Notes: generated by a model not told the origin, from the sequence alone. A stretch of 64,000 bases of DNA from Phaeosaccion multiseriatum (GCA_965112735.1 OZ218953.1:744001-808000); one strand, 5' to 3'; shown: positions 18,175-25,615, counted from the stretch's first letter. Numbers and translations: made by a program.

Positions 18175-18236
18175 TCACCACGGCGTAAAGTCACGAAGCT
18201 CCCCAAAGCTCTTGCTCATCGACAACACAGTTATCG

Positions 18237-18268
<32 letters not shown>

Positions 18269-19674
18269 GCAGGAAGCTCCCCCCCCCCCCCTCCTCCTGC
18301 TGCTGCTGCCACTGCCGAACGTACGCGTCTCCCATGCCATCGAAAAGCAGTGTCGGGGAACAGGCGCTGCCACTCGACCACCCACCCTTCTTCCTCCGCC
18401 CGCTGCTCATCCAACCCCTCACCTGTCTCCTCTCGCTGGCCACATTCGTCATTGCCGACAGCATGGCTATGTGACTTGGTGACACAGCAGCCTGCCGTGT
18501 CCTCCCAAAGAAGGAGGACGGGCACCTCCTTCCTCTCGCTGCTTCTCTTCTCGTGTCTCGCTGCGAGAGATGCTGATGTTGCTTTTGACCGTGCTGGTGG
18601 TTGGGGTGGCGGTGAAGCATCCTCCGACCGCCTCTGCCTCTTCTCATGCTGGTTCTGACGGTGAAGCCTTGTGCAGCGAAACCCCATCTTGTAGGCCGTC
18701 TCCAGCATGTGGTGCGTCATCAGAGAGCCTCGACGGGGAACAAAGGCCATGAGCAGCTTTCCCCGCTGCCCCCCCTCTGCCTCGCGAGCTCCCCTCCTCC
18801 CACTGGTACTGCTACTACTATTGCTATTACCCGCACGGGTTCCACAGGCAATACAATCCTTCTCCTCCTCCTCCTCCTCCTCCTCCTCGGGCGACGGACG
18901 CCGCAACAGGCGACGCACTGTGAGGAAGAAGCAGGCGACAGTGTCCTTGTCCATGGTAGCTGGAGCTACTCTCTCACCCCCACCTTCAGCGGTAGGCAGC
19001 TCCGACAGCTCCGGATACAGGCAGTCGGACGCAAGGATCAGGCCGAAAGAGCGTCCCGCCTCCAGCGCCTGGGCACAACGGGCAGGCCTGTGCGAAGATG
19101 CAGACGCGTTTTGTTCTGGGCCGGGCAGGGGCAGGGGCAGGGGCAGAGGAGGTCCCACGTGCAGTGCTCCACCAGGGGTGCACGTGAAGGGGTCTTCTTC
19201 GGTCCATTCTAGATATCGCACATCGAAGACGGCAGCAGCAGTTGAAGGATACTCCACCTGCTGCAGTAGATGCGGCTGCTGCTCAAGTGATTGGACATTT
19301 GCGCGCAAAAGGTGGAGGGCGGGTTCGAAAGAGTCTGTCAGCACCGCTCCTTTCCCACAGAGTAGCCCAGCTGTGATGCCGCAAAGTCCTAAGCCGCTGC
19401 CCAGCTCGAGCACCCCGTAGAGACGTCCCAAGGCCAGCAACTCTCCGGACGCTCGTGTCGTGCTCTCTCCTTCATCGGGGGCTTCCGTCGCCGAAGCAGC
19501 GAGAAAGCGGGAGAGGATAAGGGCGCTGTTCCACAGGTAGACGCCACTGGTGTCCACGGCGGAAGTCGAGCCAGCGGTAGTGGTAGCAGGAGCCGGGTCG
19601 GACAGGAGGGAAATCTTCAGTCGGCCATTCAAAGCTATCTCTTGTCTGCTCCTCATCAGCAGCCCCATCCCCAT
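18175..19674 (-). CDS. METTL21/Methyltransf_16-family protein methyltransferase, apparently single exon
   Basis: DTSGVYLWNSALILSRFL, motif I VLELGSGLGLCGI, post-I VLTD, LEW, motif II LILASDCLY. Confidence 0.85.
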
Positions 19675-19836: not shown

Positions 19837-22580
19837 ATGCTGAAGCGGCAAGAGAGCAGCAGCAGCTGGAGCAGCAGGAAGGGTCAGACTTCCGCTACGA
19901 GAAGACGACGAGCGTGGAGATTGGCCCGGAGAGGAGCAGCTGCAGCGACAGGAGCAGGGTCAGAGGGAGGCTTTGTCGTGTGGCATCTTCTGCTTCTACT
20001 TGCCGTGATTGGGCAGGAGAGACCCATGGGATCCTTCTCTTGTGGTGCGCATGCCCTCCATCTGAACGTGCAGCCGTCTTCACGAGCCGAGAAGCTCTCG
20101 TTCATCAGGAGGAGCGATTGCAGTAGTGAGGGGGTTGGCAAGGGGAAGAGGCGGGCTCTGCCATTTTCTCCGTCGTCTGCATCAGCATCCACATCTCTGC
20201 ACAGCTCCCCCAGTAGCAGCACTGTAGCAGCAGGCACAACAGGCGACGAAGGAGTGAGATGGCGAGAGGAGGAGGAGGAGGAGGAGGAGGAGGAGGAGGA
20301 GGAAGACCCTACAGACTGGGATGAGCTACGTTTCGGCGGAATCAAGCGCCTGTATGGCCAAAGCAGTCCGACGCGAGCGGAGGGGGCTGCAACAGCACTC
20401 TCCCCCGAGCGTGTCACCGGTCGACTGGCGGCTGCTCACGTGTGCGTGGTCGGAGTAGGGGGCGTAGGCTCTTGGGCCGCCGAAGCACTGGCCAGGTCTG
20501 GCGTAGGATCGATCACTCTCATCGATCCCGACTCTGTCTGCGTGAGCAACACCAATCGCCAGCTCGTGGCCCTGACCTCAACCGTGGGGCAACCCAAAGT
20601 GTCTGTGCTGGAGAGGAGAATCGCCGACATAAACCCCCAGTGCAAAGTGACTGTCATCCAAGTGAGTACACGAGTGCGGGTGTGTGCGAGCGAGCGAGTG
20701 AGTGAGTGAGTGACTGAGGTTGTGCGTGTGTGTGTGCGTGCGTGCGTGCCGGTGTGGATGGTGATGGACCTCCCTCAGCTCGGCCCAGTCGCCAGCTGTG
20801 GCAAGCAATATACACAGACGTATGGCGAGGCCTTGTCCCCGGCCATACGGACTCTGTCATAACATCCACCGCCCTTGCCCTTATCGGCCACGGACAATCT
20901 GGGCAATCTGCTTCCTCTCTCTACACACCCCGCCGCAGGACTTTGTCACACAAGAATCAGTGGCGTCGCTCTTGGTGCTCCCCCCCTACAGAGAGGGAGA
21001 GGACGAGGACGAGGACGAGGTTGGGGAGGGAAGAGGGGCACAAGGTGGCGACAAAGGGGTGGGGGGTGCAGGCAGCACGGCGGGTGCCACTCCAGCTCCT
21101 TTGGCCCCTCCACTAGTGCGAGCTCGCTTCTCCTGCGTAATCGACGCCATCGACAACAGCTTTGACAAAGCGGAGATCATCCACGCCTGCAGGCTGGCCA
21201 GGCAGCCCGTCGTCGTTTGTGGCGGCGCGGGAGGGAGGTGCGTCCTGAAGCTTGGTACCCACTGAGTGCTGCTGCTGCTACTGCTGCTGCCTTTACCCTT
21301 CAAGCTTTCGAGCTTCATCTAACCTGAACCTTTGCTCAACTGGCCTGTCTTGTGTGTGCGCATGCCCAAATCAGAATGGATCCGACGCGCCTGGTGGTGG
21401 CGGATTTGACACGCACTGAGGGCTGCAACCTTCTTTTTCAAGTGCGCAAGATCCTTCGCAAGCGATACGCCTTCCCACGCACCACCAAGCGCATCAAAAG
21501 GGGCAAGAAGTGGGGGGTGGCCGCGGTGTTCAGCACGGAGCAAGTCAACGACGAGCGAGTTGGAGTTGCTGTTGCAGGAGGAGGAGGAGGAGGAGGAGGA
21601 GGAGCAGCAGCAGCAGCTGAGGAGGTGGAGGGGGAGACAGGAAATTCGGCAAGCTCAACAGAGGTAAGTCAGTCCGCCCGCTCACTCGCTCGATCGATCG
21701 AACAAGAAGCAAGCAACGAAAATGCTGTAGTTTGGGGGCGCGAAAGACAGGAAAGGAGGAGGACAGGGAAGGGGGACAAATCGCGCGACTCTTAAAAGAG
21801 ACCCCCGAACGGACAACAAAACACTGGCACCGATACTGGCTTCTTTTGATGTGCAGGCAGCAATCAGACACACACACACACACACACGCCCCCCGCTCCG
21901 CTCCTTCGGTCGTCCGTCGGTGGCTTATCTGTCTCTCAGTCAGTCTGTTTCTCTCTCTCTCCCCTCTCTCTCTCTCTCTCTCTCTCTCTCCTTCAGCAGC
22001 AGAGCCCAGAAAGGGCGTCGATGGCCTCTACGGAGACGGGTGGAGGGCTCGGAGCGTGCGACTCAGGCATGGGAACGGCGACGTTTGTCACAGGTGAGTG
22101 CGTACGTAAGTACGGGCAACACCCCACCCCCACAGAGGGCCTTTCGCACACAGCAGCAGCACATGGCTCCTCGTACTCCGAAGGACGAAGGAGTGTGCGT
22201 ATATCGCAGCCTACTATCCATCCCCGTCGGTCGGCTCCGTCCGCTGACAGAGAACACCTCCTGACGTCGACGGATACTCTTGGAAGGAGCATTCTTATCG
22301 TGTGGAGGACACAAGGACACAAACTGAGGGAAGGAAGGAAGGAAGGAAGGAAGAAAGAATGCCCCCCAGCCCCCCCACCAATCTGCGCCAATAGTCGCTT
22401 AAGCTCACCTCTGACGGAAAGTGGTGCCCTTCTCTCTCCCCCCCTCTCTCTTGACTTGTTTGGTGCTGCCTGCCCCGTCTCCCATTGTCCTTGCCCCCCC
22501 TCACCCCCGCGACCACCGCCCTGCATCAGGGAGTATGGGTTTCTTCGCTGCTGCCGTGGCTGTCCGACTACTGGTGGAGG
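19837..22580 (+). CDS. tcdA: tRNA threonylcarbamoyladenosine dehydratase (TcdA/CsdL, ThiF family) moiety; N-terminal half of an apparent fusion
   Basis: LRFGGIKRLYG, HVCVVGVGGVGSWAAEALARSGVGSITLIDPDSVCVSNTNRQ, VIDAID, GGAGG|RMDPTRLVVADL, LLFQVRKILRK, VAAVFSTE and CDSGMGTATFVTG|SMGFFAA. Colinear with E. coli TcdA as recalled. Confidence 0.9.
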
Positions 22581-23262
22581 GGGTTGGGGTGCATACCCAA
22601 GGAGACCAAGGAGATAGCACACAAGGCGAGGAGTGCTGGAGCTGGACACATCACGCGCAGAAAGACGTGCACACCCTCCCCAGTGACCTCCTGTCTCCCT
22701 TCCTCACACCCGCACCTGCAACAGGAGCAGTTGGTGATACAGCAGCAGCAGCAACAGGCCTGTGGTCGTTGGAGAAGTCAGTGTCGGTGTCGGGCAAGGA
22801 TAGGGTTGAGGAGAGCAATGGGATGAGTGGTACAAGTAGCGGGGATAGGGAAGTCGTCGCGAGCGATGGCAGGGAACCAGCAGCAGCAGTTGGTGATACA
22901 GCAGCGCCAGGCGTTGCGCTCCATGGTTCCGGTGGCGGTGACGGTGGTAGTGTCAGACGCAGGTGGAGCGGCGGCGGTAGCAGCAGCAGCAACAATAGGA
23001 GGAGGAGGAGGGGTCGCAGTTACATGGGAAGCAGTGGAGGTCCGAGGCCGGCGGCTCCATCGACCGGTCGTGCGAATCGCGCTGTGGGGTGGAGGCTGGG
23101 AATGGCAGGGGCAGGAGCAGCAGAGGTAGAAGGAGAAGGAGAGGCGGCGCCACTGCCATCCTCGTCCTCGTCCGCCTCCTCCTCCTCACCGGTCGGGGTA
23201 TCGGCAGCGGGAGGGTCGTCTGGCGTGTCGCATTCGGGCGGCAGGAGCACAGGCGGTGGTTC

Positions 23263-23294
<32 letters not shown>

Positions 23295-23454
23295 ATAGTA
23301 GTAGCAGTAGTAGCAGTGGTAGCCAGGGTTCTTCGCCGCCCGAGCCACCAGAAAAGGCCGGTATTGGCGGTAACGGGCCGCCGCCGCCGGAGCCGCCTGC
23401 TGCTGCCCAGGGGGGCGACAAGCAACAGCAACAGCAGCAACAGCAGCAGCAGCC

Positions 23455-24031
23455 CGTAGTGCTGATGGACTCGCACTGCCATCTTCAGCTGCCCGGCGAG
23501 TGGAGAGGGAGCACGGGTGAGGTGCTGCACAGAGCGAGGGAGGCGGGAGTGCGGCAAGTGTCGCTGTGCTCCACCAACACGGAGGTGCGTGGGTGCGTGC
23601 GTGGGTGGGTGGGGGCCTTGCTTTCATGGATGGATTTTAAGTGGTGGATCCCTCTCCCGTCCTGTCCACTGCCATCCATCCTCCCACTCGAGCAGGACTG
23701 GGCCACAGTGGCCGCTCTCGCGGAGGAGTTTCCGGAGATGATTGCCCCCTCTTACGGTATTCACCCCTGGTGGGTGGCAGACCACCTCGCGGCTGCAGCG
23801 GCTGGTGCAGCAGCAGTTGGTGATACAGCCACAGTTGGTGGTGCAGCAGCAGTAGCAGCAGCAGCAGAGGCAGGTACCGATCAAGGAGAGAAGGTGAGTG
23901 AATCGTCTTCGCCGTCTGTGACGCAAGGAGAGCCCGAAGAGCACCAACCCCTTTTGGCGGAGCTCGCTTCCCCCCTCACCCCCGGTCAACCACCCTCTCA
24001 CCCCCCTCAAGCACCCTTTTCTCGGCACACA

Positions 24032-24102
<71 letters not shown>

Positions 24103-25615
24103 TCACACCCCCTCTCACCCCCCCTCAAACCCCCTCTCTCGGCACGCCATGCCACACACGCCACGCACCCACGCCCTGCTCCTTCACTTCCCTGCCCTTT
24201 CCCTTTCCTTTTGCAGCCACCACCAATAGGCTACGCTCCGGAGCACGAGCATTGGCTGGGCCCACTCCGAGCGCTGCTTCAGGCCAATCCGGCTGCCGGC
24301 GTGGGCGAGTGTGGCTTGGACAAGCTGAAGAAGAAGGAGGCGCCCATGGTAAAGCAGGAGGAGGTGCTGTATCATCATTTGGTGCTGGCGCTGGAGCTGC
24401 GACGCCCTGCGATCATCCACTGCGTCAAGGTGTGTGTGTATGTGTGTGTGTGTGCGTGTGCATGCGTGTGTGCGCGCGTGTGTGTGTTTTAGAAAAGAGG
24501 AGCAGAGGGCGATTTGTTGTTGTCTCTCTCTCTCCTCTCTCTCTCTCTTCAACTATGTACGTGCCTGTCTCTCTCTCTCTGTGCGTGTGGTGTGTGCCTC
24601 TCTATGACTCACCCACGCACGTCCCGTGGTCTCTGTTTGTGGCGTCTCTCCTTTGCTGGCTGGCGTCAGGCGCACGGTCGCCTCCTCTTCCTCCTCCAGA
24701 GGCTGTACGACGAGCTACCGCTGCTCCAGCGTATGTACGGGACGAGCGGCCCCCTTCCACTGCCTCAGGCCGAGGAGGACGAGGGCCGAGGCGAGGATGG
24801 GGGTGAAGATCGCAGCAGGGAGGGTGGAGGTGGAGGAAGCTTCGCCTATACGATACCCGCCGCCACATTCAATGGCCGCTCGAAGGAAAGCACCAAGCCC
24901 GTCAGGGGCGTGCTGCCCGTGCCTGTGGTGTTGCACGCCTTCAGAGGCCCCCCTGAGCTGGTACCCAACTTTGCGGCCCTGGGGTGCTACTTTTCCGTTA
25001 ACGGACGCAATCTCAATGCTGCCCAGGTCCTTGAAGTTCTCCGACTTACCGTTACTTACCGTTGCTTAAACTTACGTGTATGATGTCCATCTAGCCCGTC
25101 TGCCTCTGCCTCTTCTCTGCCCTGCTGTGCGCTGCTCTGCTCTGCTGTACTCTTCTGGTGTTGCCTGCTGCCCCTGCCCTTCTCTGCCCCGCACACTCCC
25201 GTGCCCTACCCCCCGGCCCTGTCTTGCCCTCACCCCTCCCGTGCTCCGACCCCCCCCCCTCCTTCGTCTCTGCCTCCTCCCTCCTCTTCCTCGCTTCCAG
25301 CTGGACCTCGTATGCCGCGTTATCCCCAAGGACCGCCTCCTTCTGGAAACAGACAGCCCTGATGGACTGCCTGAAGAGAGCGTGCTCGTTCACCTCCCGG
25401 CCTCTGCTTCTGTATCACCAACCACTACAGATGGGGCTGGCGCGGCTCGAGCCAACGAGCCTTCCTTCCTCGCTGCCACCGCGCGTTTCTTGGTCTCCAC
25501 CCCCGAGGGTAAAGCGCGTTTCGGCGATTATGAGGGACTTGCCCGACTGACCACAGCCAACGCCAACGCTGCCTTGTTTCGCTTTGAGGGCATGGACAGC
25601 AAAGCCACAGGCTAG
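23455..25615 (+). CDS. tatD: TatD-family metal-dependent nuclease moiety; C-terminal half of the apparent fusion
   Basis: LMDSHCHL, SYGIHPWW, VGECGLDK, IIHCVK|AHG, VVLHAF, GCYFS, IPKDRLLLETDSPD, NEPS and LTTANANAALF across about 5 exons. Confidence 0.9.

Follow-up and report, generated by a model that had tools for sequence, protein, structure and literature searches.

A window of 64,000 nucleotides (64 kb) from Phaeosaccion multiseriatum (GCA_965112735.1 OZ218953.1:744001-808000) contains, on its + strand, the parts of a TcdA-type enzyme followed directly by those of a TatD-type metal hydrolase. TcdA is the tRNA threonylcarbamoyladenosine dehydratase, whose product is cyclic N6-threonylcarbamoyladenosine (ct6A); TatD proteins are nearly universal, although their physiological substrates are disputed, and TatD of E. 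coli is a 3'-5' exonuclease of single-stranded DNA and RNA. Both domains are intact and lie in one open frame, and the join of TcdA to TatD in that order is conserved in dozens of algae. Judged from sequence, the fusion is very probably real, with one gene encoding one protein.

The coding model extends from the ATG at 19837 to a TAG stop and comprises 3645 nt, or 1215 codons. Coordinates and splice sites were obtained from a listing of open reading frames (ORFs) across the window, Pfam matches and direct reading of the splice signals; all homology searches were run exon by exon. The exon set is counted as ten, five for TcdA and five for TatD, with the junction exon serving as both the fifth TcdA exon and the first TatD exon (Table 1). 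As read from the sequence, exon phases agree at every junction; the donors are, in order, GTGAGT, GTGCGT, GTAAGT, GTGAGT, GTGCGT, GTGAGT and GTGTGT, plus one weak GTCCTT, and all acceptors of the gene are pyrimidine-rich CAG. The last two TatD exons were joined at the point that gives back the pattern of the family, NAAQ followed by LDLVCRVIPKDRLL.

Table 1. Predicted exons of the TcdA-TatD gene and a candidate alternative intron, in positions of the 64-kb window (aa, amino acids; D1 to D5, TatD exons).
Feature	Start	End	Strand	Content	Boundary and basis
TcdA exon 1	19837	20661	+	160-aa leader and N-terminal half of the TcdA Rossmann domain; motifs RFGG..RLYG, GVGGVGSW, D..D, NTNRQ, K	Ends in phase 0, donor GTGAGT; Pfam ThiF 94 bits
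TcdA exon 2	20939	21237	+	Acidic/Gly low-complexity insert, then TcdA VIDAID..DK, GGAGG	Ends in phase 2, donor GTGCGT; best matches fused proteins P0286, P0293; invariant D, A, D, K, G retained
TcdA exon 3	21375	21663	+	TcdA RMDPT...VRKILRKRY...KKWGVAAVFSTEQ, then Gly/Ala insert	Donor GTAAGT; best match fused P0211, 60% over 58 aa; invariant R, L, S retained
TcdA exon 4	21997	22093	+	TcdA C-terminal motif GLGACDSGMGTATFVTG	Ends in phase 1, donor GTGAGT; best matches fused P0322, P0328
Junction exon (TcdA exon 5, D1)	22530	23584	+	Last TcdA helix SMGFFAAAVAVRLL, linker of ~294 codons, first TatD strand LMDSHCHLQL (HxH)	Donor GTGCGT; Pfam TatD_DNase 35 bits; D1 best matches all fused proteins
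TatD exon 2 (D2)	23696	23893	+	DW..., IHPWW, then Ala-rich insert	59% to Heterococcus P0328
TatD exon 3 (D3)	24217	24429	+	AGVGECGLDK (bridging Glu), IIHCV (His ligand)	Pfam 47.9 bits; PDB TatD/YcfH matches
TatD exon 4 (D4)	24670	25026	+	Acidic/Gly insert, VVLHAF (His ligand), CYFSVNG	Weak donor GTCCTT
TatD exon 5 (D5)	25301	25615	+	IPKDRLLLETDSPD (Asp ligand), NEP	Stop TAG 25613-25615
Candidate alternative intron	22589	22724	+	136 nt, frame-shifting	Donor GTGCAT, pyrimidine-rich acceptor ...CAACAG

By sequence the TcdA half is of bacterial type, as the earlier note on this DNA had proposed from motifs. Exon 1 matches the structures of E. coli TcdA with an E value of 9e-30 and that of yeast Tcd1 (PDB 9HMP) with 2.5e-10; with 9HMP so far behind, the protein falls outside the yeast Tcd1/Tcd2 type. 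The top NCBIfam model is the TcdA equivalog NF011696 at 126 bits, a score reached by exon 1 alone against a cut-off of 304 bits that applies to a whole protein; ThiF is next at 77 bits. Exons 1-4 match all of the invariant columns (38/38) of an alignment of 18 bacterial TcdA sequences, and among the retained residues are those of the D-R-K motif and, at the C-terminus, of C..G.G...FVTG; the GxGGxG ATP loop of the E1-like Rossmann domain is present in exon 1 as GVGGVGSW. The D-R-K motif has been shown in TsaN to be needed for ct6A synthesis (PMC10484737). Exon 1 is 64% identical to the Heterococcus protein P0328, and across the searched genome (67 Mb in 22 contigs) the locus is the sole strong match of TcdA type. 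By analogy with characterized relatives, the TcdA half is likely to make ct6A.

The TatD half is recognized by the Pfam model TatD_DNase (PF01026; cut-off 27 bits) with 35.3 bits for the junction ORF and 47.9 bits for D3, while D4 and D5, being fragments, reach 17-23 bits each; in the PDB the TatD exons match only structures of TatD/YcfH type. All of the TatD metal ligands are present (DSHCH, GECGLD, IIHCV, VVLHA and ETDSPD in exons D1, D3, D4 and D5), and the corresponding columns are invariant or nearly so across the fused homologues. The fused proteins further share family-specific TatD motifs, namely HPWW, AGVGECGLDK, HCV, VVLH, LHS.NS and DSPD/DSPDQL. Assignment within the family is less definite; only the broad model TIGR00010 is matched, below its cut-off, no consistent orthology to E. 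coli TatD, YcfH or YjjV emerged when it was looked for, and a PADLOC search gave matches at superfamily level only (QatD, E1-E2).

The two halves meet in a single ORF at 22421-24229 (602 aa), which contains SGSMGFFAAAVAVRLL (from 22530) and VVLMDSHCHLQL (23462) and is free of stops from the one to the other. This ORF was the starting point of the earlier note, which had described the last TcdA and first TatD motifs as joined by a stop-free linker of about 290 codons; the coordinates match, and the linker measures ~294 codons of G/S/A/Q-rich, low-complexity sequence. The ORF also reads through the in-frame intron 23585-23695 (111 nt) and beyond the donor at 23894. For the possible GC-AG intron at 22626-22724 proposed in the earlier note, which would likewise keep the frame, the sequence speaks neither for nor against. 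Over the linker (22532-23461) no stop occurs in frame, as against 3 in one of the other + frames, 23 in the remaining + frame and 2-3 in each reverse frame; the open frame by itself is weak evidence, because four of the five other frames hold only 2-3 stops. Third-position GC content (GC3) and codon periodicity gave no separation of coding from non-coding sequence in the P. multiseriatum genome. The length of the linker fits a habit of this genome, that of carrying in-frame low-complexity inserts, which are also seen inside both domains.

Reads bearing on the locus come from four public runs of one sample, in which it is covered by genomic contigs that continue across the introns and show no splice joints. 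Apparent read joints at 22748-22905 were considered as splicing and rejected, being cross-matches of a dispersed repeat flanked by CAG. This repeat is a 17-mer, GCAGTTGGTGATACAGC, flanked by CAG runs and present in 20 copies in the 64 kb on both strands (at most 2 mismatches; 0 expected), at 22727-22743, 22886-22902, 23813-23829 and a further 17 positions, among them 9771, 44380 and 63353. The copies share only ~20 nt; three lie in frame inside the TcdA-TatD gene, where they read AVGDTA, and two of these are within the linker. Read depth at 22685-23082 is hundreds-fold above that of the neighbouring bins, and the motif is therefore very abundant genome-wide. In intron 4, variants at 22166 (G/T) and 22178 (C/A) each account for roughly 50% of the contig depth, in every one of the four runs, as would fit a diploid with two alleles or a mixed culture. 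Upstream of the gene, on the - strand, is a divergent ORF of 499 codons (18175-19674) with poly-Met, poly-Glu and poly-Ser runs; it starts 162 nt from the TcdA ATG, and both genes are therefore probably driven from one very short promoter region that acts in both directions.

Support for the fusion comes from orthologues in other organisms and not from transcripts of P. multiseriatum. A single ORF with ThiF/TcdA ahead of TatD encodes each of at least 31 distinct proteins from eukaryotes; the architecture of ThiF with TatD_DNase, for which the earlier note had suggested a search, was found in ochrophytes, in marine metagenomes and in two clusters of the ESM Atlas. An unrestricted HMMER search with the ThiF part of exon 1 against 1.84 billion representatives yielded several long proteins among its best 150 matches, six of which (592-742 aa) have an N-terminal ThiF and a full C-terminal TatD_DNase domain. 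A word search seeded with P0255 gave 28 proteins of eukaryote type in which Pfam recognizes both domains; they are 34-45% identical to it, and the alignments cover more than 90% of the length. Purpose-built hidden Markov models (HMMs) place both domains in 62 of the retrieved proteins, separated by 24-141 residues. Named carriers are the chrysophytes Epipyxis sp. (EukProt EP01038, P009120), Chlorochromonas (Ochromonas) danica in two independent data sets (EP01039/EP00981) and Dinobryon divergens (EP01036), and the xanthophyte Heterococcus; the chrysophyte EukProt entries are presumably transcriptome-derived. Many other fused proteins are on marine metagenome contigs, where they form one unbroken ORF beside eukaryotic genes (such as Sld5, ankyrin, WD40/LisH, Arf and HTTM). 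Matches that seemed to hold TatD only proved to be second exons that run from the TcdA C-terminus (VRKKLRQ..., KKW..., FRKCD..FGN.CF.TGTVGF) through a linker into TatD, with a ThiF ORF 100 nt upstream; in P0211, the closest protein by exon 3 (60%), the leader, TcdA, linker and TatD start share one 476-codon exon. When the TatD start of the junction ORF was used in a word search of long proteins only, no match was returned; an intron interrupts this stretch, which is also too short.

The two ESM Atlas clusters with TcdA-TatD architecture have 58 and 62 members, are eukaryotic and belong mostly to Chlorophyta where the phylum is known. Automatic names already reflect the composition: JGI uses 'tRNA A37 threonylcarbamoyladenosine dehydratase/Tat protein secretion system quality control protein', and an ESM Atlas cluster is named 'TatD related DNase/ThiF family domain-containing protein'. 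In the literature searched, no paper joins ct6A/threonylcarbamoyladenosine, or ThiF, to TatD in any pertinent way, and the three in which threonylcarbamoyladenosine and TatD co-occur are unrelated; the algal TcdA-TatD family is widespread and visible in databases through its automatic names, but undescribed in that literature. Other partners of TcdA-type domains were also met. ThiF of TcdA type is fused to QueH (epoxyqueuosine reductase, PF02677) in P0339, P0340 and P0351, from Treponema and metagenomes, so that TcdA has a second fusion partner that modifies tRNA; further TcdA-like fusions among the matches involve patatin, GATase/CTP-synthase and domains of unknown function (DUF).

Exon-wise blastp returned fused proteins as the best matches of TcdA exons 2, 3 and 4 and of D1-D5, where two of the D3 matches are truncated fused models; in tblastn, the TatD halves of fused proteins match the TatD exons of this gene and none of the other TatD paralogue loci of the genome. 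The nearest relatives of the gene are one xanthophyte protein and those of chrysophytes. A quick maximum-likelihood tree recovers an algal clade with a Shimodaira-Hasegawa-like approximate likelihood ratio (SH-aLRT) support of 98 and, inside it, the fused clade with 99; the algal clade also holds smaller fused groups and a sister clade of unfused TcdAs that includes P0001. When left free, the quick tree placed exon 1 (103 columns) among gamma-proteobacteria. This placement was rejected: a tree with exon 1 forced into the algal clade is better by 15.7 log-likelihood units, and the free placement is therefore a search artefact. Placement of exon 1 in the algal clade is not rejected by the approximately unbiased test (p-AU 0.705).

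The 160-aa leader of the P. multiseriatum protein has an R/S-rich start, a hydrophobic segment at residues 46-59 followed by GS|F, an S-rich to S/R-rich stretch and poly-Glu. Many of the fused homologues begin with a signal peptide and have Phe after the cleavage region (...SSLRA|F, ...VWS|F, ...VKA|F, ...IMS|F, ...SHA|F), clearly so in, for example, P0220, P0283, P0287, P0296, P0300 and P0211; the unfused P0001 also starts with a signal peptide and then Phe. In algae whose plastids are of red origin, proteins imported into the plastid carry a signal peptide followed by Phe. From these presequences the fused family is likely to be plastid-targeted, and organelle targeting of the P. multiseriatum protein is plausible. 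The earlier suggestion of an organelle-directed protein is made plausible by the presequences of the homologues, while the leader of P. multiseriatum itself is atypical.

The whole is best explained, with a probability that only slightly favours it, by a bifunctional TcdA-TatD protein in which TatD is a hydrolase tethered to a pool of tRNAs. One ten-exon gene at 19837-25615 on the + strand would encode a protein of ~1215 residues with, from N- to C-terminus, an organelle-type leader, a full bacterial-type TcdA, a long disordered low-complexity linker and a full TatD-type metal hydrolase with a triosephosphate isomerase (TIM) barrel. Going by its counterparts in E. coli (TcdA) and in TsaN, the TcdA half is expected to dimerize and bind ANN-decoding tRNAs; it would adenylate the carboxylate of N6-threonylcarbamoyladenosine at position 37 (t6A37), with ATP converted to AMP and pyrophosphate, and close the hydantoin ring to give ct6A, probably on plastid tRNAs. 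The TatD half would be an active divalent-metal hydrolase that the tether keeps at the same tRNA pool; the best guess is a 3'-5' exo- or endonuclease that trims or removes faulty tRNAs as quality control. Whether the TatD half acts on tRNA is evenly balanced. The conserved join across ochrophyte and green algae can be read as a Rosetta-stone hint that this group of TatD proteins shares the tRNAs of TcdA.

Several observations weigh against a tRNA-tethered TatD or against the fusion itself, beginning with gene order in bacteria. When 6 kb on either side of tcdA was examined in 80 gamma- and beta-proteobacterial loci, a TatD ORF was near tcdA in three, with an expectation of ~0.6; this is no convincing enrichment, because two of the three loci are not independent, and the earlier note's statement that tcdA and tatD are neighbours in some bacteria did not hold as a general feature. 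The three are two Microbulbifer loci, with the genes on opposite strands, and a metagenome-assembled genome of Thiohalobacter, with the genes directly adjacent. In these three genomes the TatD paralogue near tcdA is the one most similar to the fused TatD, and in Microbulbifer it is YjjV-like; in Serratia the best match to the fused TatD is TatD proper. On the same side stands the well-supported, unfused sister clade of algal bacterial-type TcdAs (P0001, P0129 and 26 others), whose members stop 20-45 residues past the FVTG motif and whose contig L099 has no TatD downstream. In P. multiseriatum itself, 45 residues precede the hydrophobic segment of the leader, unlike a normal signal peptide; the linker of ~294 aa is twice as long as that of any homologue, and with the CAG/GCA-rich local composition its freedom from stops is about a 1-in-12 event. 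The candidate alternative intron, together with the ATG at 23465 at the TatD start, would permit two products, and the public runs found to cover the locus in this species are four of DNA contigs, with no RNA run among them.

A fusion of ThiF with TatD also exists in bacteria, in Murdochiella massiliensis and 8 near relatives (WP_075967947.1, L013 8001-9902, and P0342-P0350). Its neighbours are an ATP-binding cassette (ABC) exporter, a short-chain dehydrogenase, a radical S-adenosylmethionine (SAM) protein and two TldD/PmbA genes, and the cluster is probably a peptide-natural-product system resembling those for ribosomally synthesized and post-translationally modified peptides (RiPPs). It was considered as support for the tRNA link and rejected on account of these RiPP-like surroundings.

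Among the other explanations, the one that survives best accepts the fusion and treats the two activities as unrelated, TatD being a nuclease that handles plastid DNA and RNA in general, with a join that serves only to share a targeting signal and a promoter. The variable, low-complexity character and the length of the linkers (24-141 aa; ~294 aa in P. multiseriatum) agree with it, as do the lack of neighbour enrichment in bacteria, the sister clade of algal TcdAs that works unfused, and a TatD half that fits no single E. coli paralogue; it is considered unlikely, given that order and join are kept across algae as deeply separated as ochrophytes and Chlorophyta, which is unusual for an accidental join, and that the TatD half has motifs of its own (HPWW, HCV, LHS.NS, DSPDQL).

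A further explanation also accepts the fusion and takes TatD as an amidohydrolase that acts on the modification, reopening the ct6A hydantoin to t6A or clearing epimerized or amine-adducted ct6A. The amidohydrolase superfamily, with hydantoinases among its members, also takes in TatD, and this membership speaks for such a role, whereas the TatD-family members characterized to our knowledge are all nucleases and the sequence matches of the fused domain are to TatD, YcfH and QatD only. Also in its favour, the hydantoin ct6A undergoes hydrolysis at C13, as well as epimerization, when the pH is mildly alkaline (PMC5389693). The independent Murdochiella fusion of ThiF-like and TatD-like domains gives it some further weight, a nuclease role being unlikely in a RiPP-like cluster. 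Taken together, the amidohydrolase explanation is given a low probability; its more specific form, in which the TatD domain is an eraser or repair enzyme that opens the ct6A ring or the epimerized and adducted forms arising in the alkaline, illuminated plastid stroma, is more doubtful still. If true, it would make ct6A a reversible or proof-read modification and would be the first non-nuclease, RNA-modification role for TatD.

The fusion would be lost altogether if two adjacent genes were present, with a TcdA mRNA spliced at 22588/22725 and ending at the TGA 22824-22826, and TatD transcribed from within the linker with its start at ATG 23465; a GTGCAT donor and a good pyrimidine-rich acceptor do exist, ORFs easily stay open in CAG-rich DNA, MDSHCHL is a typical TatD N-terminus, the linker greatly exceeds those of the homologues, and no RNA run was found among the public data. 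The arrangement is nevertheless very improbable, as all relatives with adjacent domains have one ORF, the family asks only for a hydrophobic residue ahead of D-x-H-C-H (F/Y/V/M/T), such that Met need not be a start, and a split gene would be expected to gather 2-3 stops in frame, as the other frames did.

With the bifunctional TcdA-TatD protein preferred, the TcdA and TatD domains at 19837-25615 should be annotated as one gene. For ct6A the writer, TcdA, is known; we know of no partner beyond CsdA/CsdE, and of no eraser. The P. multiseriatum fusion gives a useful pointer to function but falls short of establishing one.

Several known systems are suitable for comparison. E. coli TcdA (CsdL/YgdL; PDB 4D79, 4D7A, 4YED, 4RDH) shares ~60% identity with exon 1 over the ATP-binding half; the algal protein adds the 160-aa leader, three low-complexity inserts and the C-terminal TatD domain, and its gene is eukaryotic and nuclear with four introns in the TcdA part. 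Yeast Tcd1/Tcd2 (PDB 9HMP) carry out the same reaction from t6A to ct6A on the same E1-like fold, but are much more distant. The TatD nucleases (E. coli TatD, YcfH and YjjV; PDB 3RCM, 1YIX, 2GZX, 6L25) have the TatD_DNase signature and the metal ligands in common with the fused TatD, which differs in its own conserved motifs, in being tethered to TcdA and in having no TatD, YcfH or YjjV orthogroup assigned. The Murdochiella fusion joins the same two superfamilies, ThiF and then TatD; however, it forms a narrow, long-branch clade, its ThiF half is marginally TcdA-like (126 vs 111 bits) and its TatD half is nearest to QatD. TsaN of Pandoravirus is a modular TsaD-TsaC-SUA5-TcdA enzyme (PMC10484737) and is likewise a natural fusion of a TcdA domain, with the same D-R-K motif, to a functionally linked partner; there the partners are t6A synthesis enzymes upstream of TcdA, whereas the algal partner is a putative hydrolase. 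The fused proteins of other algae have the same domain order, with both halves orthologous at 43-64% identity exon by exon; P. multiseriatum differs from them in its ~294-aa linker, in a leader with 45 residues ahead of the hydrophobic segment, and in carrying extra low-complexity inserts in both domains.

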